A stretch of 64,000 nucleotides of DNA from Mytilus edulis (Eukaryota). The stretch spans positions 125,116,001-125,180,000 of the forward strand of contig NC_092344.1 of NCBI RefSeq assembly GCF_963676685.1, written 5' to 3'. Numbering within the stretch: position 1 is the first letter of the stretch; each line of letters opens with the position of its first letter. Positions 3,211 through 63,039 of the stretch are shown one piece after another. The translations under genes were made by a program, and so were the position numbers. The notes beneath the pieces were generated by a model. That model was not told the DNA's origin and ran no database searches. It saw nothing but the letters and a program-made list of their open reading frames with translations.

Positions 3211-3808
3211 GTGAGACTTGTAGTTGTCATTTTGAGTGAGATTTTTAGTTGTCAGTTTGGATGAGACTTGTAGTTGTCAGTTTGGGTGAGACTTGTAGTT
3301 GTCAGTTTGAATGAGACTTTTAGTCGTCATTTTGAGTGAGATTTATAGTTGTAAGTTTGAGTGAGATTTTTAGTTGTCAGTTTGAGTGAGACTTTTAGTT
3401 GTCAGTTTGGGTGAGACTTGTAGTTGTGATTTTGAGTGAGATTTTTAGTTGTCAGTTTGAGTGAGATTGTTAGTTGTCAGTTTGAGTGAGATTTTTAGTT
3501 GTCAGTTTGGGTGAGACTTGTAGTTGTCATTTTGAGTGAGATTTGTAGTTGTCAGTTTGAATGAGACTTGTAGTTGTCAGTTTGAGTGAGACTTGTAGTA
3601 GTCAGTATAAGTGAGATTTTTAGTTGTCAGTTTGAGTGAGACTTGTATTTGTCAGTATGAGTGAGATTTTTATTGTCAGTTTGAGTGAGACTTGTAGTTG
3701 TCAGTTTGAATGAGACTTGTAGTTGTCAGTTTAAGTGAGATTTTTAGTTGTCATTTTGAGTGAGATTTTTAGTTGTCAGTTTGGGTGAGACTTGTAAATG
3801 TCAGTTTG
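3211..3808. repeat. 25-bp minisatellite (gagtgagacttgtagttgtcagttt), about 24 copies
   Basis: Direct tandem periodicity of 25 nt. Confidence 0.95.
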
Positions 3809-13233: not shown

Positions 13234-13252
13234 ACTTGCTGTTGTCAATTGA

Positions 13253-13377
13253 ATATTTGACAGTCACAAATGCAGTTTTAATGGTGATGTGTAGCAGAGC
13301 CAGTGGAATAGATATTTGACAGTCACAAATGCAGTTTTAATGGTGATGTGTAGCAGAGCCAGTGGAATAGATATTTG
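13253..13377. repeat. 59-bp direct tandem duplication
   Basis: atatttgacagtcacaaatgcagttttaatggtgatgtgtagcagagccagtggaatag occurs twice. Confidence 0.9.
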
Positions 13378-13666
13378 CAGTTGTCAAATCTCAATTGATG
13401 GTGGCAACTCTTCAACTATAGTACTACAGTATAATATGAGTCCAAGTAAAATGAAACTGGTACAATCAGGGTTAATTTTGATATGCTATAATCTTAACTA
13501 TGATACATGTATGTGTATAGTTAGTGGCACTTATTGCTATCAATGGTTAAGCACCCATCCTTTTTTTCTTTATTTTGGTTCATACTTTAAGGCTTCTGAC
13601 CTACAAATGTATAAATCATCCCTATTTTTTTAAAAAGGTCTTTATTAATATATTTCAGAACATAAA

Positions 13667-13723
13667 ATGAGTACCATGGTAGATAATAGATGGGATCCTA
13701 TTCTTCAGAACCAACAAGGACCA
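13667..13723 (+). CDS. Probable first coding exon (exon 13659-13723): MSTMVDNRWDPILQNQQGP
   Basis: Acceptor tatttcag| at 13658, ATG at 13667 in aaaATG context, donor cca|GTAAGT in phase 0. Confidence 0.6.
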
Positions 13724-16700: not shown

Positions 16701-19700
16701 AGTGACAATGTGTCATACATATCACAAAGTGAAACATGACAGAAACTGAAAGGTGTTCTGATGTTATACATGTACATGTCACATAATTCACATGACAGAG
16801 TTTGAAATCAGTGGCACACATTCTACATGATGGCCAATGATATCAATACTGATACCACACCTTAAGTGTTACATGACAGAGTATTGATGTATGTGTCTCT
16901 GCTGACATGTCAGGGAATTTTTATGTGTCTCAGAGCTGATAATTTCAATGGTCAGACTTTTTTGTCTCAGATTTTAGATTCTTGATGTCAGGAAATTTTG
17001 GTCTTACAAAAAACAGCCCCCAACTTTCAATGCAAAGATGAGGATAGTGTATATAAATACTACTGTTGTATGGCAGCTCAAAATGTTAAAAGAAAGGTTC
17101 TTGTTGAAAACTATTTAATTTTAGATAAACCCTTAATAGTATGAACAGCAATGTAAGCATATAATTATGTTATTTTGAGGTTGTTATGTTTTTTGTAGAT
17201 TACATCTGGCTATGTTAGTAACAGTGATATCAGACAGAGAGAAAGAAAAGATCAAATTAAATGGGAAAGACAAAGAGAGTATGAAGACCTGATGAATAAG
17301 GTAAAATATTTACACAATTATCATAGGATCTCCTATTTTATAAGTGATGGGTACAATTTGTGGCACTTGAAAGTTATAACCCACATTTATATATTTAAAA
17401 GTTTTGAAATAAGCAATGATTTTTTTTAGATTTCAATTTGATAAAATTTCCTTTTAGTCTGATAAATACTTTTTTTGTTAATAATTTTTCTATAAAATCA
17501 AATTTAATTTTCATTTAGCCAGGGGAACCAGAGCAAGGCCAACAACAACAGGTATACAGTCACCATACTTCTGTTTGTCTCTCTGTCTCACAAGTGTTTT
17601 ATTTTTAACTTAATTACTTTGTAGCAAATCTAATCTTTAAAAGTTGATGAATTCTCAAATTTTGATTATTTCTTACTGATTTTTCACTAGAAAAACTCAA
17701 ACTTTTTTCTTTTGACAGCCCTATGCACTTGAGAGTTCTAATTGATATTTTATAAATAATAATTCAAGTTTTGGTTATGATACATGACTTTCTAATTATT
17801 TAACATTTTACATGATTTGGTGGAATTCTTATAGATGTATATTGTAATATTATTTAAACATTAATATATATTGTATTCAGTATTGTCATGTAGATGTTTA
17901 TTGGTTGTTGGTTGTCTGGTTCATCATTTTATATTATAATTGTCGACTACTTGAGCTGCTTGCTTTCAGAAATGAAGAGGCTCTTTCTCTAATATTGTTT
18001 AACAGAAAGTCTGTTCAGATACAATCTTGACAGAAAAAATATTTGAAAAGCTTAAAAATTTAACTATTTTGAGTGGAGAAATATTAAATCACACTTGAAG
18101 CATGATATATAGAATCTATCCACTTACTGACCAATTTCATGGTTTGTTATTATTAAGCAGGACAGGGAAATGTGTCATCCAGTAAACCAAACACATCTGC
18201 ATGTAACTAATGGTAACGGATCATGTGACAATATAATAACAAAGCACTAAAATGGGATGAATTTTTATTCATAGCACAAGTTCAAAATTTCAAAAATATG
18301 TAATTAAAACTCACTTCATTGATTGAATCAGCCCATAATATGATTAACAAGGAGTTAACTGTGTTGTAGTAAAAAATACAATTAATTCACCTACATGTTT
18401 TATTTTATTGATACCTTGTTTTAAATCTGTTTATTACAATTTATTTTATAATACCTAGGTAACATTGATAGATTGTTCCACTTTTCTACTTTTCAATAGA
18501 TGCTAAAATCCTATCTTAAGATTTTCTAATTAAGACAGTTGATATTGTGTCAAAATTTAAAAGTACATTAAAAACTTAATTCTTTGTCATATCTCCCAGA
18601 CTTAGCTTCTTGAAGCATACGACTACAAATTAATAGCAGCATCCATGCTTTAATCAGATACAAAGTTGAAGTCTAAGTAGTTTAAAGAATCTTCGTTGAA
18701 GCATTGAGATAGAATCTGTAGCAGATCAGGATGACGTTTTACATTTAATTGTTTTTAGCCAAACCCACCAGTATATTATAAAACTGGAGGAGCCGGAAAT
18801 AGCTTACCATTAGGGAGTTACGAGGAATCCCGTAAGACTTTAGACGATCAGCGCCAACAAGAGTACAATCGATTTGTAACCCAGGTATCACTGCTAGATG
18901 GCGCCATTCGTCAACCTTTTAGTAGACGCTAACATCTTATATTTATTTGCAGCAGTTTATTTAATGAACACTTTACATATTACATTTTTGACACACTTAT
19001 TTATATTTATATAATATTTGCACCATAATATTTCTCTTTTTTCAGTGAGTTCCTGCACAATACCTGTTTTATTTATATCCATGCAACATGTGTGTTTACC
19101 TTATTCTAAACCCATGCAGCATGTTTGTTTAACCTATTCATTATTAACATGTCTTTGGTTCTTTACTACAGTGAGTTCTCGGCTTTATTTCCAACTGCAT
19201 ATTATGATGAGGATGGCTTCAGTTTCTTGATATACTGCTGCTTAAGAAAGTTTGAGATACATTTACTGTTGTGAACTTGTCCATAAACAATTATTAATCT
19301 GCGTTCAATAAAAGAACAATGCTTAAACTGATGACTCTGCATTCCTAAGACCCTTTCAGAAAGTCTCAAAAAGCTAATGACAAACTGGCATTTTACACTT
19401 TGCAATTTAATTTATACATTTTAAATTAAATCTTTGAATTCTTGAATATTAACTGCTTCTTTGTTGGATATCTTGTTTATGAAACACGGAGATGTGGGGT
19501 ATATAAGACATTTTAGAAGTGAATAGAATTGGTACCAACATCATTTATATGTGACTTTATGTGTGTTTGTCAGAAAGTTATACATTAGATGACACATGTA
19601 TTTTTCAATCTTAACACTTTGTATGTGTTTGTCAAGAGGACTGATTATTAAGTTAAAGTATTGATGCCCAAATATTACCCATTAATAAATCCTATCAAAA

Positions 19701-22700
19701 GTGAAGTTGTTATTTGAATGTCACTGAATTCCATTTGGGTCTGTTTTTGTTCTGAGGTAATTCAATGAAGTCAAAAAGCTTGCTTTTAATTATACGTTAT
19801 TCATTGCAGCCTTTCATATATTTTTTATTACTGAATTCGTATTAGATTATTTGGGTATACTTCATTTAACCTCATTACTAATATTGATTGACATGTATAC
19901 AGGTGTATTTAAAACTTATATTTTCTATTTTGAATACTATGTTGGAGACCAATGAATGTGAATGGGTTCAGATAGGTTTTCATTGTTGACAGATTTAATT
20001 GCTTAAATAAAAGGCGGAATTTGTGTTCAACCGCATGTGTTCAGTTATGTCAGGTTTTACAGTGTAATTCGGGTATATTCCAGAAAAGGTTTGACTGTAC
20101 TTTCATTCATGAATTCTAATGCTAAGTATAATTTTCACCTGATAAGATTTATTTTCCTTCTATTTATTTTTGATAAGATTTCTCTGTAAACAATGTCTTT
20201 TGTTATGGGTTTAAGGTTTATTTAGTGAAGAAAATAGCAATTAAAAGGCATAAGATTAATCAGTGAACCAGAGCAATCAATTTGTTGACAAACTATATAA
20301 ATGTATTGAGTTCCGTCCTTTTGTCTCATTTAAAATAAAAAACAATACACCCGTATTTGTTGACGATTAAGGTTTGTTTGTTATTTATTGATAGCTACAC
20401 ATTGTGTTTATTGTTTTACATGTTTAGAAGTTTAAAGGATAATCTCAAAGGGCTATTATCATAATGATTTAGTATACACAATAGCCTGCTTTATTTGGCT
20501 TGTTTAATGCTTTTAAAGCTTATTCAAAATAACAAATATTTTTTTTAGGGTATAATTTGTAAGCTTTGATTTAAAAATAAATCTAGTTCCATTTTCATTT
20601 TTTTTACATTACAATTGAATGACTTTGAGATGTTCCTTAATTAGACACTGCAGTAAGGACCCGTGGTGACATTGAAAGTAATTGTTTGTAGCTAGAGGGT
20701 TTTGTTTTTGCAGTATATGTGATTTGGCTGTATGTTTTAGTGAAATGTGTTGGTACAGCTAAGTTTATCTCATCTTATCTGACACAAAAATAAGTGTCCT
20801 TGATTTATAGGTTTATATTACTTGTCAGATAAGTAAAGACTGGCTAAAAAGGTCTTATCTGGTGGTTAAGTATAAGTATTTTTTTTTACATTTAGGGATT
20901 CATTCATTAGAGTGTGTATAGGTGTATTTTTTAGTGTCTCTGTACTATAGAACTGGACCAACAAAACATGTTAATAGACCATTCTTAACAGTTATTTTAT
21001 TGTTCTTGAGAATTTGGTTTTAATGTCATTAACTTTGATAGTTTCTGTTAAATTCATTCACAATATATACATATACCTGTGAAGATTTAGAATTCGTGAC
21101 ATATAATTTAGACACCTATCTTTTGCTGAAGAATGTAGGTTGTCCTGAGTTGACTATTGTTTATTTTTGTTGTTTGGTTACTGTGACTATTTTATTCATT
21201 GGGCAAAGAAAGATAACTCTTGTTAAACTACCAAGGAAAGTAACTCTTCTGAATATAACAGTGTGATGCTAGTTTATCATATGCATTGTACTTATAGCAT
21301 TCATTAAATGTTTTATAGAAAAAAGACACAGAAAACAAAAGGAGAGAAGAATTGTACAGAAACTCTCAACAGAATTATAGACCTCCGCCTGAACCAGAAA
21401 TGTATGATCACGGTCAGATAGCAAAAGACCTCAGAGAAGAACGACAAAAGGAATATAATGATTATCTCGTAAGTTTTCTTACTTATTCACAATGTCACTT
21501 AGAATAAGTGGAATGATTTGTTGGGATAAGGAAAATATAAACACAATTGTTTCTGAGAAGACAAGATGGTTAAACATCTATTTTTCCTTATTTTATTTGT
21601 AACAGTTAAATTATTTTTTTATAAAATGTTACAAATGTGGTTAATATAAGTAAAATTTTAATACATATTTAGATATGAAATAGAGTTGTACCTGATCTAA
21701 AATGAATACATAAAGAAAAGTTGGTTTATTATTTTGTGCCTGTTATTTTTAGTACAGATATTTTAGTAGAAAAGTCTTTCAAGCAATCATGGGAAACATT
21801 GAAGGCAGCATTTCTAAACTGCTCTTCATCAATTTATTAAGCATTAAATATAAAGTGTTTGAAATTTTAGAATACCATAATAAGACAATAATAATACATC
21901 AGTTAAATTAATAATTAATAAAATTCTGAACAAATTTAATTAATATCAATAACAATTGACTGGAAAATTATATATCAACATTCTGAAACGCTATAAAAAC
22001 CATAGGAAAAGCTAAAGGGTGAAAATCAGAAAATAACAGTTGGGATGACATATTGAGTAAAGGGAATTCATATGTTATGTGCATGCAGTAGAATAGCATA
22101 TAAAGCTAGACAGCTGATTCAGCCTAATGTGCTTATTTATAGTGCAAGTATTTTTTTTACATTTAAACTTTTTCATTTAAAATACTTGTTAATATATTTT
22201 CTTTCATTCAACAAATTTAGTTTTCATGTTGATTTTAGTCACAGCATATTTGCTTGTATTTTCTTAGTGGTTCTATGATAACAAGATTTGCATTCTTCTA
22301 AAAATCTAGTATTGAAGGGGGAATATGAATTAAAAAGAGGAGATTTGAGGGTTTGCTGCTCTGATACAGCAATCAAACAATATACATTTGAAACATATTA
22401 AAGTACACCACAGAAATAGAATAGAAAGGCAGAAATTTGCTATGTATAAGATGTTGACCTGGAAAGAAGTTGTAATTGAGTTTAAATGACATAATCTGAA
22501 ATAAGGGAGATAATTTTAAATTTTTACAGAAAAACAAAGGTAACTTGCATGTGTCAGTCATGTTCTGTATGATGCTGCATGCATTCTGTCTGTTATCAAG
22601 TCTTAACAAAAGTTGACATATAATCACATCATAAATATACACATTTTCACATGAATGTTGCATGGTCACTCTGCAATAATTGAAATAGAATTTGAGTATT

Positions 22701-25700
22701 TAGGTATTAAGATAAACTTGTCATTCATAAAGGAAAAAAATATGAAGATTTTTTGTTATTTTTGATAAGTTCATGATATGGTATAAATTGATGTTTTCCT
22801 ACATTATTTAAAAGGAACCTCCCAGCAAGGGATTTACACACCATGAAGATAGAAAGAAAATGCTTTCTCAAGAGCGAAATAATGAATATAATGAATTTCT
22901 TGAGAAGAAGGTATAGACAAATGGTGTATTTTGACATGTGATGGTTTATTTGTTTCACTTTTTGGTATTGCACATTGTAGCATAAGTATGACTTGGTGAG
23001 AGTTATTCCAAGTTTTATTTAGTTATTGTAGCTGATGTAATTCAATGTTTGTAGACAGGTTGATATAAAAGTCATAACAATTATGTTGATGGGTAATCAA
23101 GAGGTACAGGGTTCTTTTTCATTGACAGTTAAGAAGGATTATTAACTTACCCAAAATAATCAACCTAGAAAATAAAGGCAGATTGTAGGGTTTTTAATGT
23201 GTATTCTTTTAGATGTTGTAAACAGCATTTTTTGTCTACAGGCATACTATGATTTGCATTTAAATTTTGTTACGCCTGTGGTATACCCTGTTGTGTAATA
23301 TAAATAATGACACATATTTTAACAAACATGTTTTGATATGAATTTGAACAAAAATATGAACATAGAACATAAGACATATCTCAATGCTCACTATTGTTTT
23401 TCACACCCAGATATAAAGCTCTCAACTACACACAAAATAATAAACAAATAGTCCTTTTATTTCAGCTGCACCATGTTATACACATCATGCTTTCAGTTTA
23501 AGTTTTTAGATTGTGTTAGACAAATATGCTTTAGTTAAAGTTGCAGATTGATATAGCGTTAAACAAGTTTTGCTACAGTTGTAGTTGTAGCTTGTGATTA
23601 AGGCAAACACATTTGGCATGATTTTGTGTTATAATCCTAGATCATTACATTTTGTGTTTTGGCTTCTGCTTCAAGTCATGTTTCAAACTTGGCATTATTT
23701 TAAGTTACAGTTGCTGCATGAAGTCATGTTTTAGTTTCAGCTTGTTGTCATTTATCACCATGTTTAAGCTGCAGCTTGTCATGTTTAAGCAGTTTGTATT
23801 TGTGTTTTTGAGTAGTATGGTGTAATGTATTAGATGCAAACTGTTTTCATTTTTTAGCTTCAGCTTATTGTCATTTGTCACCATGTTTTAGCCGCAGTTT
23901 GTCATGTTTAATCTTCAGTTTCTTGTCATGTTTTGACTGCAACATGCCATGTTTTAGCCACAGCTTGTCATGTATAGCAGCAGTTTGTTGACATGTTTTG
24001 ACTGCAACATGCCATGTTTTAGCCACAGCTTGTCATGTTTTAGCCGCAGCTTGTTATGTTTAAGCAGCAGTTTGTTGACATGTTTTTGTGAAGTATAATG
24101 GCATGTTTTGGATGCAAATGGTTGTCATGTTAAAGCTGTGGCTTGTTGCCATATTTTAGATTCAGCTTGCTATGTTTTAGATTCAGCTTGGTGTCATATT
24201 TCTGTTCCAGCTTGTAAATTATTGATTCAGTTTGTCCTCATATTTCAGCTTCAGTGTGTTCTAATGTTTTATCTGCAGCTTGTTGTTATGTTTTTTTGTC
24301 CAGGTTGTTTGTCATGTTTAAGCTGCAGCTTTGTTATTGTTTAAGGCAGCATGTTGTCATGATTAATGTACAAGTTGTTGTCATGTTTTGAACATCATCT
24401 TGTCTTATTAAGCTATAGCTTGTCATATTTCAGATGCAGCATGTGCCGGGTTTTATCATGCTGCTTGTTGTCATGTTTTATCTTCAGCTTGTTGTCATGA
24501 TTTATCTTTAGTTTGTTCTCATGTTTTATCTACAGCTTATTTTCATGTTTTAGCTTGAGCTTGTCATGTTTTTGCTGCAGCTTGTTTTCCTGTTTTATCT
24601 GCACCTTTGTTGTCATGTTTTAGCTGCCACTTTTCATATTATAAGCTACAGATGTGGTCATTATTATCATGCAGCTTGTCTTATTTTAGGAGCATCTTTT
24701 TAATGTTTTAAGCTGTATCATGTTAGCAAAATTTAGGTACAAGTTTTGATTGCAGTTTGTCGTCCTTTTAAGATGTAGCTAGTTGTAATTTTTTCCCTGT
24801 AGCTTGTTCTCATGTTTCAATTGTCATATTTAAGTGACAGCTTGTTGTCATGCTTATGCTGCAACTTGTAGTCATGTTGTTATCATATTTTAATTTCTGG
24901 TTGTTGTTATTTTTAGCTGCAATTTAAAGTGATGTTTTAGATGCAACTTTTATTTACGTTTTAGCTGCAGCTTGTTGCCATGTTTTAGCTTAAGCATATT
25001 GTCATGTTTAAGTCATAGCTTATGATGTTAAAGTTAGAGCTTGTTATGTTTATGTCAGAGCTTGTCATGTTTAAGTCGGGCTTATCATGTTTAAGTCAGA
25101 GCTTGTTAAGTTTAAGCTAAAGGATTTTGTCATGTTTTAATTGCAGCTTAATGTTCTGTTAAAGTTGTGGCTTTGGTAATGTTTTGTTTTATCTGCAGCT
25201 TGTTTCCATGTGTTAGCTGAAGTTTAGTGTCATGTTAAAGCTACAAGTAGTTGTCATGTTTAGAACAGTCTGTCAAGTTTTAGTCAGTCTGAGTGTCATG
25301 TTTGTCATATCTTAGCTGTTGATTTCATGTGTAAGAATTAGTTTGTCATTTTCAGGTTCATTTAAAAATAAGAAGATGCTGTGTGATTGCCAATGAGAAA
25401 AATCTCCACCAAAGACCAAATGACATAGAAGTTTACAACTATATGTCACCATAGGGCTTCAGCAATGTGCTTGTTTCATGTTTTACTTGCAGCTTGTTGT
25501 CACATTTCAGCAGCAACTTTTTGACAGTTTAAGTTTCAGCTTGTTGTTCTTATTAAACTGCAGCGTGTCAGGTTTTAGCTGCAACTTGACAGGTTTTTAT
25601 ACATTCATGTTGAAGACCATGCTTGGCGTTTTTTAAGCTGCAGCCTGCAGTTTCTTTGTTATGTTTTTTCAGCATGTTTTTCTGATGTAACTGCAGCTTG

Positions 25701-49700: not shown

Positions 49701-52700
49701 TCACATCATTTGTGATATTTTTGATTCGGGGAACACACCACTTATATTATTTTTGGTATGGGAATGACACCACTTATAATATTTTTGTAACAGTAATGGC
49801 ATCAATTATGATATTTTGGTTACTGGTGTTAACTCTGTTAGATTATTTGTTTATTTTATCTTTGTATGTCTCATGGTGAAGGTTTTATATGTTTTATAAA
49901 TCATTTTTAAGACATTTATGGTATGTAAAACTGGTTTATAGCTTTATATAGTATGTATATATTTTTATTTCATTCTTAAGTCCTCTCTATTTAACTTTTC
50001 ATTTTGGTGTCTATAGTTGTTGGGGTTTAAGTTATGAAAATTCCAGATCAACTCCATCAAACTAGGCTTAGGCAAATTTAACACATGAATGTTTGATTAA
50101 TCTGCTAAATTTTAAGTTTGCAAGAAGCTTTAATGTTTGGATGTAAATATTCATTCTACAAGTCTTATTTGTTTAGTAAATATTATTCAGAACACAAAGA
50201 AGTTTTGATGGATAGATAAATTGTTGGAATAATAATTTATATTTAGAACATCTTATTAGAGATAGCCTCTGAACAAATTTATTTTGTCATATAGATAAGG
50301 ATGGTCTTCCTTGAGTTGGCTGCTTTGGTGTGAATCACTGTATATCTAAGCTCTCCTCCATGTATTAAAATGATTAAATCATAATTCATTATCAGCTCAT
50401 CTCAATTTGTTGCAAGCACTTTTATAGAGTTTTATGAATATCAAGCATGGAATATAAATCTGAGTTCTTTATAAGGGTAAAATGTCCTGTATATTGTACT
50501 TTTATGGACAATTACCAGTTTAAAAAAACCCTGAAAATTTGTATTTTCTTTCATAAGGAAAGTTCATTTTAAACTATGTATAAAGCAATTTTGATTCTTA
50601 CAAAAAGCTCTTGATTCTTGATGGAATTTAGAGATATATTGTGTAGAGAAAGTGATAAATCAGATTCAGGGATTTTTCTTATAATATGAGGCAGGCATTA
50701 CCTGTAAATGGGGACGAAGTCTGTATGAATTATTTTTTTGTACCTTAAATATTTGTTTAAAAAAAAAGAAACGGAAATACCGTAACGTTTCCGATTTTGG
50801 TTCTGTTGTTAGGGATTTAGTTGTGACGTTATTTAAATTATGACGTCATATGCAATGTAAACAAAGAAACACTATCATCAGGTAACGTTTTTTCATATCA
50901 AGGAATTATTAAAAATGAAATTGGTATTGCGCGTTCCTTCCTATTTTATACTAGACTGATAAATATATATTTTACTCAAAGTTTCATACAAACGAGACCG
51001 GAAAAAGGAAGTACATTGTACATTTCTGCGCAGGTCCTGGATTTCAAAACACGACAAAAAAAATTTGAACGATTTTGAGTTCATTAGTACAATGAAAAAT
51101 TCGAGAAATTTTCCCGTATTTTGTTTTTATTGAATTTTCTACTGTTATTATGTAAGACTCTGCATAAATATTATCTTTTTTTTCTTGAATTATACTTAAC
51201 CCTTTCCTGCATGGATTTTTTTTTACATACTTGATTCACATAGGATTTTTCTATAAAATGCTGGAAATACACTTACTTTACTGAAATATAGTTAAGGAAC
51301 CTAAAATAGACCAGTTATTTTTGTATTATCATATTATTGTAAATGTTGTACTCTGGCAGACATTTGTAATGCACTTATATATAAATAGATATAGGTATAC
51401 ATCATGACATAACATGTCCTAGTATGTATCTTTAATTAATTTGTATATTTATGTTAATTTTTTCATATACATGTATACCCTAATAATTCTATTTTTTTTT
51501 TGGTCTGTGAAGAGAGCCTATTTTTTCTGGGAAAAAGGAAAAAACTATATGGCACTTGAAACAAAATTGAAATTGCCGTAATAAATCTGTATACTTTAGT
51601 TCAAGGGGAGTTCATTATGTATAATGAAAAAAAGTATGTGATCATTTTTTTTTCATATAACCATTAGATGCTTTTGGTTTTAAATTTATGATAAAAGAGT
51701 TGTAATTTTGCCATTTAAACAGCAGTCTTCAGGTCATCGTGCATGGGTTGATATGACAAGTCCTGTCGGAGCTCTGGGTGGGAGAGATACATACAGTGAT
51801 AATAATAAGAAAAAGTTCAACAATCAACGTCGTAAAGATTATAATGAAATTTTAGCCAAGGTATTTATCTGCTCTCTTTTGCTGCATTAATGCCAAATGC
51901 TTACACGGTAATGTTAGAAAAAAATTCATATCAAGCTCTTGTAACAAGAATAGTACATATTTTTAAACCAAAATTTACAAAAGAATAAAACTTAACTTTG
52001 GATATAAATCGTTGTTGTCATTATTTAATTTAAATTTGTGATTAAAGCATGATACATTTTATATACAACAAATGTATAATCTTTAAGTGTATGAAAGCAA
52101 AACATTAATCTTTAACTTTTAATGGTGACTTGCTGTATGAGAGTTTTGAAATTGACTTCTTGTCAGATTTTATCGACAAGTATCTCCATAGAGATGTTAA
52201 ATTCCCTGAATGTGCAAGAAACATTTAGGTTAAGACGTTTAAAAATGTATTATCATCAAGTAAAAAATATCCTACACTGATGTAAAGGGAGACAACTACC
52301 AGATATTATTTTCTATGTAGCAACCTAAAAGTAATCATGAATGGAAAGACTCTTCTGGTCTTAAAGGTGTCCTAGCAACAAAGGATTTATATTATGAAAA
52401 ATACGTAAAAAAATTAATGAAGAAAGACGTCAAGACTACAATAGAATATTATCATTTCTGCTTAAGATTTGTTATATTTTATTACATTTTATAATTTCTG
52501 TTAATTGGCTTACTCTGTAATTTGTGTATATAACATTAAAATTGAGAAAGGAAATGGTGAATATGTCAAAGCGACAACCACCCGACCATAGAGCAAACAA
52601 CAGCCGAAGGCAACCAACGGGTCTTCAATGTAGCGAGAATTCCCGCACCCGTAGGTGTCCTTCAGCTGGCCCCTAAAATATGCATAATAGTACAGTGATA

Positions 52701-55700: not shown

Positions 55701-58700
55701 AACATATATCTACCATTTTTTTTTACATGGAACATTTTACCATAACGTTGCATGTAAAAACGTGTGTTGTTTAGCGCGGTGAATAACACTTTCTCAGGTA
55801 AATATGCTTTTGTATTCAAAATCCAATTCATATAGAGAAACCTACTAAAATAATACCAATATGGAATAAGTCTAAATATTCTTCAAATTCAAAGAGTTCT
55901 TTAAAAAGTTAAGAAATAATGCTTTGGGAGAATTTTCCATTTCTGATTTCCATGTCTGCTGAAGTTGGTCAAAAATTATCTGTAGAATGCTCAACTTAAA
56001 CCATTTTGGATTAAAACTAAAGTTGCTCTGATTTAACCAAATATTTGAAAGTCCATATTTATTCAAGATATTTTTTATACATATCAACCATTCAAAATTT
56101 TAAGAGTACTAACTGATCTTCAAGTTAGTATTACACAGCTAAAACAATGTTGTATTATGGTCAGGTGATCAAAAGTTATGGTTGTTTTAGCAGTCAGTAA
56201 ATAGGTGTAAAAATTCATTTTAAATTTAGTAATTACTGGTAATAACTGGGCCGTTTAAGGAATTACTTGTATTAACTAAGTGCATCGGGAATTACCTGTA
56301 ATTCCTAAATTTTAGTAATTACATGTAATTCCTAATTTCACCTATTTACTGTAACATATATATGTGTAATTAATTGATCTTTTAATTCTAACTAATATGA
56401 TCTACACTCAAATGCACTTTTTAACATTATGATTTAAGAGCATATTAAAAATCCATGTTACAATTGTTAACTGATGCTATGATATAAAGAATTGTTGAAG
56501 TTTTTTCCTATTTAAGTACTAAGAAATGAGAATTTATAAGGTGAAAAATTCTTTTTTAAACTTTTGCATAATTAAGTATTGAACATAATTTAATTGGAAA
56601 AACTAACTAAGAAGCATTATTGTTATTTTACGATGCCACAATGTCAGTGTATGTTGAATGTGCTTTCATCTGAATGAAACTATCTCGGTACCCAAGTCAG
56701 GTAAGATAGTATATCATTTTCTGATACCCAAGTTATGTTATGACTTGATACTAATGTATGATTGCTCTTTATAACCACAGAAGACACCTGAACAGGGAAG
56801 GAGGGAATGGATAGATACGTCAGGCCCTAAAGGAATTATTGCTGGGGTCGATTCATATAACTATGATAAACGTAAAAACTTTGCTGAGGAACGGAAAAAA
56901 GAATATAAAGATATTATGGAAAAGGTACCAGTGTGCTTTGTATGCTAGGCTCTACTTTGTTATCTGGTTCCCTTTAGATTATATAACATGTCTGTTGCGT
57001 TATATGTTGTTTTGAATATACATGGCTTCAATACTTAATGAAAGTTACTCTATTTGCTTAGATAGATTATTTCAGTGCAATTTATGAGAGAGAATTTCTG
57101 TAAAAGTTGTAATATAATAGAGAATCCAGTTTAAAGTTGACCTCACTGAAATTTTCTGAAAACTTTCAGTGTGGTATATTAGAGATTTAGCTAAGCTAGT
57201 TTATACAGAACATTACTTTTGACATATAAAAGCTACTTGAAGAAAGTCCATGTATATTTACTGTTGTCATATAATATTTTCTACTCTCTAATAATTAATT
57301 AATTACCTTGTATGGTTTAGTTTAATTTAATAAAACATTTCTAAAACTGGATACCAAGTTTCATGTGGTAACTGGAACAACATTTTTGTTTAACCCTTTC
57401 ACCGATTGCTGCCCAGACAGAAGCTACTCTGAGACGATGGCTTCCCTGGCTACTTTTACTCAAGTGGGAGATCTTAATAATAAATGTCAATAAAAACTTG
57501 TTTGTAGTTATTTGTTTATTTATTTCATTCACTAACACCAAGTTCACAGGTTTTTTTATGTTTTGATAATTTTTTCCTCATAAAATATTCAAATTTTCAA
57601 TTTTTCGGCATTATTTCAGTGAAATTCTCAAAATTCTGCTTATTGACCCCAAATCGTAATTTTTTTAACCCAAAATGGCAAAATTTTGAAAAAAAATTAT
57701 GAGGCTGTACAAATTCCTCACACTGAACGATGTCCATTCCAAGTGTTTTGAACATAAAACGACATTTTATGTCAAAAAAGTATACTAGTTTGGCCTCAAT
57801 TCTTCCATATTCTTTCTAAAAAATTGTTCCCTCATTTCAAATTCTCGTAAATTCCGTAAATTTCCTCTGATTTTGACACGGTTTTCAACAAACTGAAGCG
57901 TCATGTTTACACTTTCATCCGGGTTATTCATCAAAGAAAGATAACTCATGTTTGCACTGTTTGAGCCGGAAATATAAAAGATGTATTCCGATCCCGGTAA
58001 AACGGGACTCGTCGTCAGCAGTCTGAAGCGTGAATCCCGGTAAACCGGGACTCATCGGCGAAAGGGTTAAGTTATATAAAATGTACTGCAGATTTTTGAA
58101 ATTATGCATAGGCATTTGTATCTTGTCTTAAAATTGAAAGGATTTTTTTTCAGAAATACCTCTATAGGGATAGAAAGACACTGATATTATATCAAATTTG
58201 ATAGGTGTTGCTTAGTTTTGAAAACAAAAGAAAGTAACAAACTTTTGATTTTCTTATTTCTTGAACAGTCCATATACAAAAAAGTAATTTGCAAAATGTC
58301 AAGAATCTGTTGAACAGGCTACATGCAAACTTGGTAATGATGAAATAGTAACAAACTCTTATCTTGCATGAAAAGTGATAGCCTTTATTAGTTATTAATA
58401 ATGTATGATATGGAAAAGGAATATGTACAGAATAATATTATTGTAGGGTAAATGTATACTGAGTTGTTTTAAGACTAAGGCCAAGGGTTTAACAGTGTCT
58501 GTTTTTAGACTAAGGCCAAGGGTTTAACAGTGTCTGTTTTTAGACTAAGGCCAAGGGTTTAACAGTTTCTGTTTTTAGACTATAAGGCCAAGGGTTTAAC
58601 ATTGTCTGGTGTTGGTTAATTATGCCCCACCTACGATAGTAAAGGGGCAATATGTTTTCTGGTCTGTGGGTCCGTTTGTTCGTACGTTTGTTTGTTCGTT

Positions 58701-61700
58701 CGTCCCGCTTCAGGTTAAAGTTTTTGGTCAAGGTAGTTTTTGATGAAGTTGAAGTCCAATCAACTTGAAACTTAGTACACATGTTCCCTATGATATGATC
58801 TTTCTAACTTTAATGCCAAATTAGAGTTTTTCTCCCAAATTCACAGACAACTGAATATGGAAAATGATAGTGCGAGTGAGGCATCCGTGTACTTTGGACA
58901 CATTCTTGTTTTTGAATTGTTATCTTATTTTTACCCTTATTCTGGGTTTAAGTATATATATCCTCTTTTATTCTATGAGTCTTTTTTTAGCTCACCTGGC
59001 CTAAAAGGCCATGTGAGCTTTTCTCATCACTTGGCGTCCGTTGTCGTCGTCGTCGACGTCGTCGTCGTCGTCGTCGTCGTTAACAATTTTTCAAACATCT
59101 TCTCCTCTGAAACTACTGAATGGATTTGAATGAAACTTAACATGATTGTTCCTTAGTATATCCTGCACAAAATGTGCGCTTCGATTTTTGATCCGTCAAA
59201 AAACATGGCCGCCGTTACTTAAAATAGAACATAGGGGTCAAATGCAGTTTTTGGCTTATATCTCAAAAACGAAAGCATTTAGAGCAAATCTGACATGGAG
59301 TAAAAATGTTCATTAGGTCAAGATCTATCAGCCCTGAAATTTTCAGATGAATCAAACAAACCATTGTTGGGTTGCTGCTACTTAATTGGTAATTTTAAGG
59401 AAATTTTGCAGTTTTTGGTCATTATCTTGAATATTATTATAGATAAAGATAAACTGTAAACAGCAAAAAAGATCAGCAAAGTAAGATCTACAAATAAGTT
59501 AATATGACCAAAATTGTCAATTGACCCCTTAAGGGGTTATTGTCCTTTAATGACAATTTTTCACAATTTGTTCATCATATTTGCTAACTTTAAAAAATCT
59601 TCTCCTCTGAAACTACTGAATGGATTTGGTTAAAACTTAGCATGATTGTTCCTTAGATTATCCTGCTCAAAGTGTGTGCTTTGATTTTTGATCCGTCAAA
59701 AAACATGGCCGCCGTTACTTAAAATAGAACATAGGGGTCAAATGCAGTTTTTGGCTTATATCTCAAAAACGAAAGCATCTAGAGCAAATCTGACATGGAG
59801 TAAAAATGTTCATTAGGTCAAGATCTATCAGCCCTGAAATTTTCAGATGAATCAAACAAACCATTGTTGGGTTGCTGCCACTTAATTGGTAATTTTAAGG
59901 AAATTTTGCAGTTTTTGGTCATTATCTTGAATATTATTATAGATAAAGATAAACTGTAAACAGCAAAAAAGATCAGCAAAGTAAGATCTACAAATAAGTT
60001 AATTTGACCAAAATTGTCAATTGACCCCTTAAGGGGTTATTGTCCTTTAATGACAATTTTTCACAATTTGTTCTTCATATTTGCTAACTTTAAAAAATCT
60101 TCTCCTCTGAAACTACTGAATGGATTTGGTTAAAACTTAGCATGGTTGTTCCTTAGATTATCCTGCACAAAGTGTGTGCTTTGATTTTTGATCCGTCAAA
60201 TAACATGGCCGCCGTTACTTAAAATAGAACATAGGGGTCAAATGCAGTTTTTGGCTTATATCTCAAAAACGAAAGCATTAAGAGCAAATCTGACATGGAG
60301 TAAAAATGTTCATTAGGTCAATATCTATCAGCCCTGAAATTTTCAGATGAATCAAACATCCAATTGTTGGGTTGCTGCCACTTAATTGGTAATTTTAAGG
60401 AAATTTTGCAGTTTTTGGTCATTATCTTGAATATTATTATAGATAAAGATAAACTGTAAACAGCAAATATGATCAGCAAAGTAAGATCTACAAATAAGTC
60501 AATTTGACCAAAATTGTCAATTGACCTCTTTAGGAGTTATTGCCCTTTAAAGACTTTTTTCACAATTTGTTCACCATGTTGACTTACTTTAAAAAATCTT
60601 CTCTTATGAAACTGCTGTATCAATTTCAGCCAAACTTAGGCTAAATGAGTTTCAGAGTTTCAGAGTATCTAGTATAAATTTTATATTTCATTTCCTTGTA
60701 TGTCAAGAAACATAGCTCCTATGGCTAAAATAGAACATAGGAGAAAATGATTTTTTTTTGCTTTTGAAGAAAATAGGACGATTCAAAGAACATTTAAATA
60801 AATTGAAAAGCCAAAATAATCATTGATGAGAGATTAAACCAAAAAAATTCAGGTGAGCGATTCAGGCTCTTGAGAGCCTCTTGTTTAAATTCAAGATAAT
60901 GTTATTAATTTAACTTAAGCCTTTTTGGTATTGGCCTTTTTTAATTTTTTGATTTAACAGATTTTAACTGTTAATTATATAATCATTATAGGTAATTTTA
61001 TGAGTTTTTGCCAAAGTTTGAATGTATAGTAAAGAATTCTATTGTAAATACCTATCGTTTTGGTTCCTTTTCTGATTTGCATATTGTAGTTGATTAACAT
61101 TTTTAAATTAATTTAATCAACTATAAAAAGAAAGCAGGTGTTTCTTCCACCAAAGTAGAGGTTGAGGAACCAGTTCAAGAAGAGGAGGTTTGTTATTTTG
61201 ATATTGTCAGTTTGTGGAGGTTATTTAAGATTATTTTTAAAACAAACAATATACCCATTCATAGAAGATATTGTAATAATTAGTTTGCCTTTTCATTTTC
61301 AAATGTTGATAATGTACCTACCTAAAGTTTTCTTGGTGGATCAGATTAAATAAAAAGATGCGATAAGACATTATTGAAGAACACTTCAGACTCATTGATT
61401 GTCACTTTAATCTACAAGTGTGTACAATAATTAGTGTAAAGATTGCATTCAATCCCTAATGGAACTTCTTTGATTTGTATGGGATTTTCCTGAAATAATC
61501 AATACTTTTTGGAAACACATTAATGTAGTGCATTGAGATGAACATCTTATACATCCTAAAAATATTTTATGGAAATATATACTCAGATACTCAAGTTACA
61601 AAATAAAGTGTATGTATAGAACCAACTTCTTCATGTTTTACAAATGGCATTTGAATGTACATTTTTGTGTAATATTAAAATTGGGTAATCTTCTTTTGTC

Positions 61701-63039
61701 CGTAATTGTAGTTGAGCCAACTTCACTTCTAGACAAGAGGAGATATACCTAAATTGAATATTGCCTTCCATTTATCAAACATTGCAATGTTTAATTTCGG
61801 TTTCCATTGCAAAATGAATGCAATCTTTACCCACAGTGCTCTCAAGCACTTTGATTTTATCAGAATGTTTGTATGTTGTAATTACTGAAATACATGCATG
61901 TTAAAAATTATTATTCAGATTTTGTATTAACATTTTTCATATAAGTATCAGTTTTGAAAGTAAAAGAAAATACATCAATTGTAAGAAAAGCAATGAAAAA
62001 AGGGAAATAAATCGCAGGGATCATGAATATGGTTAAAAAAAAATTCTTTTTGTTGCTTTTAATTGGTTCTTTTACATATAAAATTGATACTTGACTACTA
62101 ATTGTTGCATGTAGCCAGCTTTAGAACGGAAACCTACCACACCTATTAACCTTAATGCTGTGAAGATTTTCCCCGTCGGATCAGGTTATACCAGAAGACA
62201 GCGCGAATTACAAGCAGAAAGAAAGAAAAATTTTAAAGACTTTGCTGAAAAGGTTTGTCTGAAAACCAGAAAGAAGATAGATTTAGTGTGTAATGTCGAC
62301 ATTGTCATGTTCCTGTTATGTTATAATGGTATTGTTAGTGTAGTGTTATTTTATGTTATTTTATGTTATTGTTATACTTTGTATTTTATGAGAATTTTGT
62401 TAACCTATGTAGCAGAGGTACATTGAGAATTACTTTATTTCTTACTTAATAATACCACCATTTCCATCTCTAAGTTTGACTATTGGAGATGGTAGACTCT
62501 ATTTACACCTCTGTGGATGAAAAGAAATCCTGAAAAACAATAAATGAAATGATTATAACAGTTAATAAGTATAATCCGATTCTCCCTGAGCATGATTCCT
62601 TCTTGACCACCATCCGGTTTTGGATTAGAATATTTGATTTGTTTCTACAAATCAAATATTACATGCAAATTTAGTGGAAATTAGCTAAGGGATAATTTTC
62701 CAAAAAGCAGAATTACTGATATTCAGTTTATAGAACTTTTTGGTTGATTCAGGATCCTTTAGCTTCGCTAATTTTGAAAATTTATTATGAAAGCTACACC
62801 AAATATATAAATAGATTTTGATTATTATAAAGACATAATTATGTTGTTTATAAAATTCTTTCTTTGTTTAGAAAAATGAAATCTATAAAAAGCAGCAAGA
62901 AAACCGAGAGAGTTTCCGTGAAAGTTTAGACCGTGATCTAATGGAGTCGCCACCTATAATTCCTATTGGAGAATATGACACAAAGAAACGTCAGTTCAAA
63001 CAAGAGGCCCACCAAGAAATGGTCAATTTCCTTGAACGG
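13667..63039 (+). CDS. Large multi-exon gene encoding a CSPP1-like helical-repeat protein (about 27 coding exons, about 1,130 aa in this window, 3' end beyond the window)
   Basis: A chain of AG/GT-bounded, stop-free exons, all phase 0 with coding lengths divisible by 3. Most end in an ER..EYN.FL.K motif. Similarity to CSPP1 repeats is recalled, not searched. Confidence 0.85.
13692..14059. repeat. 60-bp minisatellite (6 copies) duplicating the exon 3' end and donor
   Basis: Unit gggatatctattcttYagaaccaacaaggaccagtaagtataattgtatgaggtactcaa. Confidence 0.95.
14439..15010 (-). mobile_element. 3' end of a CR1/L2-group LINE (ORF2 C-terminus, 3'UTR and (ATT)n tail)
   Basis: Peptide LMHKCLKNEAPVYL...YKKSFIYSGSILWNNLP...FKK, followed by a structured 3' end, AATAAA and an (ATT)n tail. 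Confidence 0.8.
15797..16665. repeat. 41-bp minisatellite (aaatatgatacatgtcacttagtggcacatgacagtgtctt), interrupted at 16402-16612
   Basis: Tandem period of 41, with degenerate copies on both flanks. Confidence 0.92.
16402..16612. mobile_element. Small TIR element inserted in the 41-bp repeat
   Basis: Imperfect TIRs tgtcaacgtatatttgttcc and ggaacttatattccgtgaca, with ACAT on both sides. Confidence 0.55.
17199..17300 (+). CDS. Repeat exon: ITSGYVSNSDIRQRERKDQIKWERQREYEDLMNK
   Basis: tttgtag| ... aag|gtaaaa, 102 nt, phase 0-0. Confidence 0.85.
17519..17551 (+). CDS. Micro linker exon: PGEPEQGQQQQ
   Basis: ttttcatttag| ... cag|gtatac, 33 nt, a GC-richer island. Confidence 0.65.
18759..18884 (+). 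CDS. Repeat exon: PNPPVYYKTGGAGNSLPLGSYEESRKTLDDQRQQEYNRFVTQ
   Basis: gtttttag| ... cag|gtatca, 126 nt. Closest to the recalled CSPP1 SLPLG..YE motif. Confidence 0.9.
21319..21468 (+). CDS. Repeat exon: KKDTENKRREELYRNSQQNYRPPPEPEMYDHGQIAKDLREERQKEYNDYL
   Basis: ttttatag| ... ctc|gtaagt, 150 nt. Confidence 0.9.
23560..25710. repeat. Old, degenerate ~21-24-bp tandem repeat (tgtcatgttttagctgcagct-like)
   Basis: The motif recurs dozens of times with high divergence and a strong T/G strand bias. Confidence 0.8.
26399..27018. mobile_element. Non-autonomous element with a ~160-bp terminal hairpin and a short inverted repeat pair
   Basis: Hairpin 26399-26558. Inverted repeat attctgataggac (26560-26572) pairs with gtcatgttagaat (27006-27018). 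Confidence 0.7.
27453..27599 (+). CDS. Repeat exon: KQKISEEHSRIKHRHRYTPAGGLAIGQYDLQRKRLRDELSRDYKQSLLK
   Basis: ctttcctaacag| ... aag|gtaatt, 147 nt. Confidence 0.9.
27912..28046 (+). CDS. Linker exon: QRQDQLVFRAKEFQLDSAPEYLGNLTEERPLVGSPRLSYEIPKYQ
   Basis: cttttag| ... cag|gtattc, 135 nt, stop-free in phase 0. Confidence 0.75.
29786..29917 (+). CDS. Repeat exon: REQEIHTRRQMPPTPPGGLNIATEQERKRVEDIKKTMYRDELLK
   Basis: ttttacattag| ... aag|gttaat, 132 nt. Confidence 0.88.
29940..30150. repeat. ~32-bp minisatellite (ctaagttcataatgaacttgacctttagtatt), about 6 copies
   Basis: Tandem periodicity. The unit contains the palindrome aagttcat-a-atgaactt. Confidence 0.85.
30454..30627 (+). CDS. Pro/Arg-rich linker exon: QQKEQLYNRATQQGEVSVINRTSPTQAPPNQISPRGRPPPHPDSGRRRGPPPQNDRMQ
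   Basis: atttgtag| ... cag|gtgggt, 174 nt. Confidence 0.85.
30799..33433. repeat. 62-bp intronic satellite (about 34 copies), split by a MITE
   Basis: Unit tatccaagaatagagataacagggttatttcccttgtctgtacctaacttgatggtcagagg. Confidence 0.97.
32485..33003. mobile_element. 519-bp MITE with hAT-like termini and a 6-bp TSD
   Basis: TIRs catagatgccaacc and ggttggcatctatg. GAATAG duplicated at 32479-32484 and 33004-33009. Confidence 0.9.
33617..33742 (+). CDS. Linker exon: EKSRETPNYWNEGRQAPSPKSVESDSKNVKPLNVESETKTKQ
   Basis: taacag| ... cag|gtatac, 126 nt, stop-free in phase 0. Confidence 0.78.
35497..35616 (+). CDS. Repeat exon: PMESHRPQEGDLRTGFFDDRRASPLNRDERQQDYQQFLAN
   Basis: ttctacag| ... aat|gtaggt, 120 nt. 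Confidence 0.87.
35670..36727. mobile_element. hAT non-autonomous element
   Basis: TIRs tagtgttgtcaa and ttgacaacacta. 8-bp TSD CTTTAATA at 35662-35669 and 36728-36735. Subterminal AACCGGTT motifs. Confidence 0.92.
36806..37556. mobile_element. Possible decayed piggyBac-like MITE
   Basis: Imperfect inverted ends ttagctttaccctgctg and cagcatggtaagggttga. The TTAA sites are degenerate. Confidence 0.35.
37928..38092 (+). CDS. Repeat exon: KQREDEMKHQRLEDQRHAPHLDLSKGDYYDAETYERKRMSLNSERKNDYQNFLSK
   Basis: tttatag| ... aag|gttagt, 165 nt. Confidence 0.9.
40455..40565 (+). CDS. Repeat exon: QKENKMSQVKETEDFQTERHHVLAKERNREYNEFLEQ
   Basis: attcag| ... cag|gtttgt, 111 nt. Confidence 0.87.
41108..41386 (+). 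CDS. Long repeat exon: KRKMRPITRDMGG...SLSINEEAKAASKMSMKMERKREYNNYLKNQTTKK
   Basis: Pyrimidine tract plus taaatag| ... aag|gtatta, 279 nt. Confidence 0.88.
41629..41760 (+). CDS. Repeat exon: PQGLTKEKTPQGYGSLYFNEEYSERREKAQKHALNEEYNQYLTK
   Basis: aattag| ... aag|gtatat, 132 nt. Confidence 0.87.
42138..42254 (+). CDS. Repeat exon: EGLKQEKVEPLQLEEDYQTRRQKELAIERHQDFIDYLEK
   Basis: ttatag| ... aag|gtatta, 117 nt. Confidence 0.83.
42604..42780. repeat. 24-bp minisatellite (aatgttgattctgtcgtccatttt), about 7 copies
   Basis: Tandem periodicity. Confidence 0.92.
43590..43727 (+). CDS. Repeat exon: QNSGVTSQRNGPVVNVGLPLYQEKYDDHYNNLKQKRNNEYNELLEQ
   Basis: atttgtag| ... cag|gtaaaa, 138 nt. Confidence 0.9.
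44706..44744 (+). CDS. Micro linker exon: MSNRQNMKADKLF
   Basis: Strong tttttttcttcag| acceptor and ttt|gtatgt donor, 39 nt, phase 0-0. Confidence 0.55.
46352..46486 (+). CDS. Repeat exon: TSRPSYRQYTPESLQGLPIGQTRYDHQKKQQEVQRNREYNEHLAK
   Basis: tattttag| ... aag|gtagac, 135 nt. Confidence 0.9.
47078..47859. mobile_element. Non-autonomous element with a 13-bp inverted repeat pair, a ~108-bp terminal hairpin and an internal tRNA-like segment
   Basis: ttacatcccagct (47078-47090) pairs with agctgggatgtaa (47739-47751). Hairpin 47752-47859. Confidence 0.72.
48735..48836 (+). CDS. Divergent repeat or linker exon: KGEKIGMEDELLTRRDMTLKKYMEDQVRSEMHDK
   Basis: ctttatag| ... aag|gtaaac, 102 nt. Confidence 0.75.
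49432..49572 (+). CDS. Repeat exon: FRDFTKPSEKDVGPDKFGLPIGQFRYDDWRKHQVVERSKEYQDMQAQ
   Basis: atacag| ... cag|gtatct, 141 nt. Confidence 0.88.
51723..51860 (+). CDS. Repeat exon: QSSGHRAWVDMTSPVGALGGRDTYSDNNKKKFNNQRRKDYNEILAK
   Basis: CAG|CAG (NAGNAG) acceptor ... aag|gtattt, 138 nt. Confidence 0.88.
52321..52474 (+). pseudogene. Decayed or frameshifted repeat exon (QPKSNHEWKDSSGLKGVLATKDLYYEK / RKKINEERRQDYNRILS); may survive as a truncated exon 52321-52404
   Basis: Good acceptor ttctatgtag|. The repeat helix lies in a shifted frame after an A5 run, and no GT occurs at the expected end. An in-frame tac|gtaaaa donor is present at 52405. Confidence 0.65.
52538..53237 (+). repeat. Interspersed repeat (aaaattgagaaaggaaatgg...tgtcaaag family)
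   Basis: The first ~140 bp are homologous to 6238-6380. Confidence 0.65.
53679..53800. repeat. 45-bp tandem repeat, about 3 copies
   Basis: tatacatttataccttgagcgattagtatttatttatctacagtg. Confidence 0.8.
53811..54126. repeat. 24-26-bp minisatellite ttgttctgt(ta)ntgtgtaa
   Basis: Tandem periodicity. The repeat resumes at 56357 after an insertion. Confidence 0.9.
55099..55392 (+). mobile_element. Short Helentron-like (HINE/pearl-type) element
   Basis: atgccccac and gtggggcat inverted repeats, a (GTCC/GTTC)n microsatellite and a short 3' hairpin. A second copy lies at 58620-58910. Confidence 0.8.
55514..55869. mobile_element. Element with a ~146-bp terminal hairpin and a 12-bp inverted repeat pair
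   Basis: Hairpin 55514-55659. ttattccacatt (55661-55672) pairs with aatatggaataa (55858-55869). Confidence 0.68.
55872..56100 (-). mobile_element. LINE ORF2 fragment (RTEX-like)
   Basis: IKNILNKYGLSNIWLNQ...DQLQQTW...SPK is typical of the region downstream of the RT domain. Confidence 0.55.
56781..56924 (+). CDS. Repeat exon: KTPEQGRREWIDTSGPKGIIAGVDSYNYDKRKNFAEERKKEYKDIMEK
   Basis: ccacag| ... aag|gtacca, 144 nt. Confidence 0.9.
57394..58066. mobile_element. piggyBac-type MITE
   Basis: TTAA at 57390-57393 and 58067-58070. TIRs ccctttcaccgat and atcggcgaaaggg. Confidence 0.85.
58466..58608. repeat. 35-bp tandem repeat, about 4 copies
   Basis: gtttttagactaaggccaagggtttaacagtgtct. Confidence 0.88.
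58620..58910 (+). mobile_element. Second copy of the short HINE-like element
   Basis: Highly similar to 55099-55392. Confidence 0.82.
58986..60885 (+). mobile_element. Helentron-associated non-autonomous element with three or more internal ~500-bp tandem repeats
   Basis: gctcacctg and caggtgagc subterminal IRs, (GTC)n and 3' hairpin aggctcttgagagcct. The unit tctcctctgaaactactgaatgg occurs at about 59101, 59601 and 60102. Confidence 0.9.
61131..61187 (+). CDS. Possible short linker exon: KAGVSSTKVEVEEPVQEEE
   Basis: 57 nt, phase 0-0, gag|gtttgt donor. The AAG acceptor is weak. Confidence 0.5.
62115..62252 (+). CDS. Repeat exon: PALERKPTTPINLNAVKIFPVGSGYTRRQRELQAERKKNFKDFAEK
   Basis: catgtag| ... 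aag|gtttgt, 138 nt. Confidence 0.88.
62872..63039 (+). CDS. Repeat exon: KNEIYKKQQENRESFRESLDRDLMESPPIIPIGEYDTKKRQFKQEAHQEMVNFLER
   Basis: ttctttctttgtttag| ... cgg|gtataa, 168 nt. Confidence 0.9.

Follow-up and report, generated by a model that had tools for sequence, protein, structure and literature searches.

The locus described here is the Mytilus edulis copy of a mollusc-widespread paralogue of CSPP1 that is misnamed 'trichohyalin-like' in RefSeq. It lies in a window of 64,000 nucleotides (C1:125116001-125180000 in a 1.37-Gb assembly) of AT-rich eukaryotic DNA, with a GC fraction of about 0.31 and without N. As an earlier sequence-only reading of the window had proposed, it is one large gene that encodes one helical module per symmetric phase-0 exon, and 25 RefSeq isoforms agree with this layout. 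We regard the identity and architecture of the gene, as set out below, as very probably correct.

CSPP1 (centrosome and spindle pole-associated protein 1) is a ciliary tip protein associated with Joubert syndrome, and its gene is a ciliopathy gene; to our knowledge, only the middle region of the protein (MTB, pausing domain) has been dissected so far. The repeated N-terminal motif of CSPP1, each copy of which is a separate phase-0 exon, is apparently undescribed, and a literature search returned no paper on the present gene or on the repeated CSPP1 motif. Searches on the oyster accession, on 'trichohyalin-like' together with Mytilus and on oyster sperm proteomes likewise returned nothing relevant. 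The gene itself is public annotation, and our analysis corrects a misleading database name that has spread across bivalve annotations. A mollusc paralogue that consists almost wholly of this motif, in 23 copies and with natural copy-number isoforms, also constitutes a system in which the function of the motif can be studied.

Module exons, extent of the gene and age of the array

All 18 module exons listed by the sequence-only reading lie on the plus strand, are free of stop codons and have lengths divisible by three, with an AG acceptor (..yag/ after a pyrimidine-rich tract, the slash marking the junction) and a phase-0 GT donor. The donors follow directly after the motif (..ER.KEYN.FL.K/GT), mostly as AAG/GTA or CAG/GTA, and that of exon 21319 stands two residues early (..EYNDYL/GT). 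Strict regular expressions of the originally proposed motif found few copies because the spacing of the motif varies, so a profile built from the 18 modules was run over the six reading frames instead. The LP[IL]G element of that motif occurs in only about eight modules, but its constant part, Y..(R/K)K....ER..EY..(F/L)L.K, is retained, in modules that range in length from 32 to 93 aa. Five further intact modules, none of them used in building the profile, were recovered, two in the window (22815-22910, E 2.4e-8; 39066-39182, E 3.4e-6) and three less than 5 kb past its end, bringing the intact genomic modules to 23. The minus strand yielded no match to the profile better than E 0.76; this strand specificity and the profile E-values indicate that the pattern is real and far beyond chance.

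Searching 1.84 billion representative proteins with the module profile returned as best match XP_071151322.1 (E 3.9e-154, 18 matched stretches), the RefSeq protein Mytilus edulis 'trichohyalin-like isoform X24', which maps exon by exon with 100% identity onto the window and about 12 kb of downstream sequence. Another 24 M. edulis RefSeq isoforms map, also at 100%, onto the same exons. Database proteins were used for all full-length analyses, and the exons of the window were searched one by one. The gene, which had been presented as hidden, is therefore already annotated in RefSeq, for M. edulis and for several other bivalves. Its proposed span of 13659-63039 holds at the start and not at the end: 13659 is the acceptor side of the ATG exon (13659..13723, plus strand; ATG at 13667), which encodes 19 aa ending in NQQGP and has the donor CCA/GTAAGT, while at the other side the gene continues for about 13 kb past the window, with the last mapped coding exon at window+12108 (positions downstream of the window are given as window+n). 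The estimate of about 27 exons compares well with the 26 annotated coding exons within 13667-63039, to which exons 49432 and 51723 can be added. From 17199 to window+9106, 31 consecutive coding exons have AG/GT bounds and lengths divisible by three; the last three introns of the gene are in phase 2.

Other resources offered little on single modules. Pfam returned nothing for ten single exons, the module profile found no more than a chance match among PDB sequences (Csm5, E 0.43), and the ESM Atlas, queried with one module, provided only sub-threshold leads (RIB43A and CFAP141, 0.83). AlphaFold2, applied to the module of exon 46352 aligned with 17 sisters, predicts a coil of 20 aa that leads into a helix of 24 aa with pLDDT of 89-98, and for the full isoform X24, aligned with 23 homologues, it predicts about 20 separate helices (pLDDT 70-89) joined by low-confidence linkers, with a pTM of 0.21 and no globular fold. 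As modelled, about 13-18 short alpha-helices are strung together in the protein, with disordered Pro/Gly/Gln-rich linkers between them. Some of the predicted helices cross exon junctions, so that a skipped exon would also alter helix length.

The array is largely old. Of the 23 modules, 17 score higher against an oyster orthologue than against any sister mussel module, which places most duplications before the mussel-oyster split, with positional identity kept since, and bears out the suggestion of old exon duplications under constraint. The younger copies are 22815, the pair 40455/42138, 49432 (a sister of 46352 and 39066) and 51723/56781 with their decayed sister at 52321..52517 (plus strand); they are mostly cassette or seldom-used exons. 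The decayed module is a pseudo-exon that has kept its acceptor but not its donor and is frameshifted by 1 nt near 52397, and its M. coruscus orthologue reads intact in gene models.

Relation to CSPP1

In trichohyalin and proteins of the S100-fused type, Glu/Arg/Gln repeats come after an S100 EF-hand domain at the N-terminus. A Pfam search (E <= 0.01) of isoform X24 and its relatives detected neither an S100/EF-hand domain nor any other. We rejected a trichohyalin identity on the lack of the S100 EF-hand domain and on the different repeat; the likeness is confined to a helical composition rich in Glu, Arg, Gln and Lys, and the database name is a compositional artefact.

The proteins that do share the module belong to the CSPP1 family. 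The module profile matches proteins bearing the CSPP1_C domain (PF24578) in Mya, Haliotis, Batillaria and Nucella, with 8-12 modules each, and CSPP1_C was detected in gastropod and Mya proteins that have 9-13 modules; the same profile finds three modules in a Priapulus CSPP1-like protein and two weak ones in one fish CSPP1. The features of the family found at the locus are N-terminal modules of the form G.Y..K....ER.KEYN.FL.K and a box of the form P.YEE(M/I)L..KR.EE..YRR. The last exons of the gene, beyond the window, encode this CSPP1-type box (YEEIL..KRREE..YRR), which reads PSYEEIL.SKRREEASYRRFEDPEY at the C-terminus of the locus protein and also occurs mid-protein in CSPP1. BLASTP of the protein tail aligned it with residues 831-860 of a Haliotis CSPP1-like protein at 73% identity (E 4e-12), and with proteins of Batillaria (E 4e-9), Mya (CSPP1-like, E 3e-5), Priapulus (E 2e-3) and Nucella.

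The true CSPP1 gene of M. edulis is found on the same chromosome, 10 Mb from the locus, at C1:115255000-115309000. The mussel genome contains two matches to CSPP1_C, one at C1:115308635 and one on the small contig C935, which is probably an unplaced haplotig, and none at the locus. The sole module match outside the locus lies 48 kb upstream of the C1:115308635 match on the same strand, and at least seven module exons can be recognized in mussel CSPP1 (115255368-115264871), in each of which the motif runs straight into a phase-0 donor. Mussel CSPP1 and the locus have both the module and its exon boundary in common, probably through inheritance from a shared ancestor. A candidate microtubule-binding exon of mussel CSPP1 is located near 115288269.

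Two kinds of evidence define the relationship as paralogy within this family. On one side, the locus shares with CSPP1 a repeated N-terminal module (G.Y...K....ER.KEYN.FL.K), which mussel CSPP1 likewise encodes with a single copy on each phase-0 exon, and the YEE(I/M)L..KR.EE..YRR box; one of its units may correspond to the microtubule-binding helix region of CSPP1, and many isoforms (X28) are also listed for the CSPP1-like gene of Mya. On the other, Pfam detected no CSPP1_C (PF24578) in five products of the locus family (isoform X24 and relatives), so that the locus is not the CSPP1 orthologue and is instead a paralogue without the long C-terminal half, which would not be expected to reach the centrosome in the manner of CSPP1. 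The locus also has 23 genomic modules, as against two in fish, three in Priapulus and about 8-12 in mollusc CSPP1, its conserved box is C-terminal rather than mid-protein, and its microtubule-binding-like unit sits inside the array, whereas in CSPP1 the corresponding region follows the box.

CSPP1 is a luminal microtubule stabiliser that acts on damaged lattices and on ends that are growing; for binding it needs no more than a short helical MTB region (human residues 375-453), and the N-terminal 294 residues, which the short mammalian isoform lacks, add to microtubule binding (PMC9948759). Judging from fish and invertebrate sequences, we infer that the modules and the box fall within these N-terminal 294 residues. 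We also take a candidate region in fish CSPP1 to be the equivalent of human residues 375-453. Mollusc CSPP1 retains this candidate MTB region (E 1.7e-13 to 2e-7), and in the locus protein it matches exon 29786 and the start of exon 30454. In hhalign comparisons it aligned with the 29786+30454 unit with a probability of 86% (E 4.7e-6), against 6.5% for a generic module, these being compositionally biased helices. The alignment suggests a modest resemblance of this unit to the CSPP1 microtubule-binding helix. We give microtubule binding by the locus protein a little less than even credence.

Cassette splicing and its possible role

The mapped M. edulis sample comprises 25 gene-model isoforms of at least 50 in RefSeq, where isoform numbers run up to X50 in a word-based search. 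These 25 isoforms use 34 coding exons in 35 exon forms, one exon having an alternative donor, and display 25 different inclusion patterns in which 23 exons (24 exon forms) vary and between 13 and 18 modules are present, out of the 23 intact modules in the genome. Annotated isoforms thus differ by the in-frame inclusion of single exons or of exon blocks.

All exons are on the plus strand, and inclusion is given here as the fraction of mapped isoforms. The module exons 17199..17300 (25/25), 21319..21468, 35497..35616, 37928..38092 and 56781..56924 are constitutive, as is the Pro-rich linker exon 30454..30627. Inclusion is 23/25 for the module exon 46352..46486 and 24/25 for the non-module helical exon 48735..48836, the acidic linker exon 61131..61187 and the module exons 62115..62252 and 62872..63039, the last coding exon within the window. 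Cassettes are formed by a 33-nt linker exon encoding PGEPEQGQQQQ (17519..17551, 21/25), by the module exons 18759..18884 (LPLGSYE.., 21/25), 27453..27599 (19/25) and 29786..29917 (GLNIATEQERKR..YRDELLK, 21/25), by a non-module extension exon (27912..28046, 14/25) and by a further non-module exon (33617..33742, 15/25). Rare cassettes include the two module exons that the sequence-only reading did not list, 22815..22910 (3/25) and 39066..39182 (LPIGQYRY.., 2/25), the module exon 43590..43727 (3/25) and a 39-nt micro-exon, 44706..44744 (3/25). Two module exons with intact splice sites, 49432..49572 and 51723..51860, occur in 0/25 mapped M. edulis isoforms. The former recurs, with 100% identity, in two isoforms of M. 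galloprovincialis, and it also occurs in M. coruscus models; the latter, present only in M. coruscus models (91% identity), is a candidate exon in M. edulis. Eight further mapped coding exons, three of them modules, extend from window+1144 to window+12108, with an unmapped terminal piece beyond.

Inclusion follows a definite structure in these 25 isoforms. Four module exons, 40455..40565 (15/25), 41108..41386 (12/25; at 93 aa the longest module exon), 41629..41760 (13/25) and 42138..42254 (13/25; a young duplicate of 40455), form a block (40455-42254) that is in or out together, 41629 always accompanying 42138. Exons 39066, 43590 and 44706 are included only when this block is out, exon 22815 never co-occurs with 27453, 27912 or 33617, and one isoform drops the exons from 61131 to window+1284 together. 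Splice-site strength did not separate rare from constitutive exons. The expectation that any exon could be skipped without a frameshift is supported by the gene models, with at least 50 isoforms and recurrence in two other Mytilus species; its extension to free combinatorial inclusion finds no support, given the blocks and exclusions just described.

In M. californianus (at least 31 isoforms) and M. galloprovincialis (at least 39), the models that we sampled show variation in these same cassettes. C. gigas has at least 42 isoforms, and tens of orthologue isoforms also occur among M. trossulus, M. coruscus, oysters, scallops and clams. We consider it reasonably probable that the cassette splicing is functional, on the basis of Gnomon-type gene models whose combinations may be partly computational.

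The explanation that best accommodates these observations, and which we favour with some reserve, is that the protein is a CSPP1-paralogue module string in which splicing tunes microtubule contacts. As in the N-terminal part of CSPP1, the module helices would make weak contacts with tubulin or microtubules, and the unit of exons 29786 + 30454 bears some resemblance to the CSPP1 microtubule-binding helix; alternative splicing would tune the number and spacing of the contacts, which may suit different stable microtubule arrays, such as those of gill cilia, sperm flagella and centrioles. A bolder version, which we think rather unlikely, holds that the module is an undescribed tubulin-contacting helix of CSPP1 and its paralogue, expanded in molluscs into a splice-programmable, multivalent and possibly luminal stabiliser. 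If this were true, cell types would choose between 13 and about 20 contacts, and among positional modules, for gill cilia, sperm axonemes and centrioles.

The architecture could be as described and the isoform diversity nonetheless be mostly splicing noise or over-enumeration by the annotation pipeline, with one or two dominant isoforms doing the work and the rare exons (22815, 39066, 43590, 44706, 49432 and 51723) being young duplicates that near loss, as 52321 has done. The rarest exons are indeed mostly lineage-specific duplicates, for which the closest match is a sister module and no oyster sequence; one sister copy, 52321, is already frameshifted and without its donor, exon 51723 appears in no sampled RefSeq isoform, and the gene models are computational. 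We judge this account fairly unlikely, however, since the same cassettes vary across independent annotations of three Mytilus species and oysters, scallops and clams also have large numbers of isoforms, while the rare exons retain open frames and good splice sites and exon 49432 is 100% identical between two species. The favoured reading would also fail if the protein were a generic charged single-helix or coiled-coil scaffold (nuclear, cytoskeletal or matrix) unrelated to microtubules, its similarity to CSPP1 reflecting only an ancestral repeat. The absence of CSPP1_C, a RefSeq name resting on composition and a motif whose abundance of E, R, K and Q is shared by many single alpha-helix proteins fit such a scaffold, but the match to CSPP1 is specific, extending over the motif, the exon boundary and a second conserved box, and the microtubule-binding region of CSPP1 is matched far better by one unit than by a generic module, so that we deem the scaffold improbable.

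The suggestion that the array sets protein length as a molecular ruler finds no support. A ruler would consist of interchangeable modules on a periodic lattice, with exon number setting the measured length, and the symmetric exons, the variable number of modules (13-18) and the near-constant helix of each module (about 24-27 aa) are what such a device would display. Against this, the modules measure anywhere between 32 and 93 aa, the linkers are predicted to be disordered and are of unequal length, non-module exons are interspersed in the array, and individual module orthologues have been kept over the mussel-oyster split, which marks the modules as position-specific and not interchangeable. 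A ruler is in our estimation very improbable.

Nor does the mussel locus represent a genetic system of a new kind: repeat proteins encoded by arrays of symmetric cassette exons are well known. In tau, MAP2 and MAP4 each microtubule-binding repeat is encoded by one exon, and inclusion of tau exon 10 changes a 3R into a 4R protein. The mussel gene is similar in having a short repeat per exon and in-frame cassettes that change repeat number in an otherwise disordered protein, but its motif is unrelated, it has about five times more repeats and its microtubule binding is putative. Nebulin and the titin PEVK region are symmetric exon arrays with heavy cassette splicing that encode ruler or spring proteins. 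They resemble the locus as long arrays of symmetric exons, one module each, whose isoforms differ in module number; nebulin, however, has fixed modules of about 35 aa that match the actin period, in contrast with the threefold length variation in the mussel gene.

Tandem arrays and upstream features

A 60-bp minisatellite of six copies with 95% match occupies 13698-14058 and starts inside the ATG exon, the 3' end of which is its first copy. Each copy contains an acceptor, the sequence AACCAACAAGGACCA (NQQGP) and GTAAGT, and with an acceptor and a donor in every copy the array places five splice-ready copies of a 15-nt micro-exon after exon 1. Among 86 retrieved Mytilus proteins containing NQQGP, none has it more than once.

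Upstream of the gene, a 362-aa ORF on the minus strand (149-1237) has no Pfam match, and a second minus-strand ORF (2253-2747) has a sub-threshold match to zf-AD (E 2.9e-5, 24.7 bits against a cut-off of 28). A 24-bp minisatellite of about 96 copies (10912-13233) lies directly upstream of the ATG exon and generates long artefactual ORFs on both strands (11150-13267). Arrays of a 62-bp unit with 97-99% identity are found at 30798-32484 and 33004-33433 (27 and 7 copies), and further tandem arrays, intronic and upstream, at 59089-60617, 3211-3808 and 15795-16392, with units that include one of 500 bp (3 copies), one of 25 bp and one of 41 bp. Satellites of this sort seem to account for a considerable share of the intron sequence.
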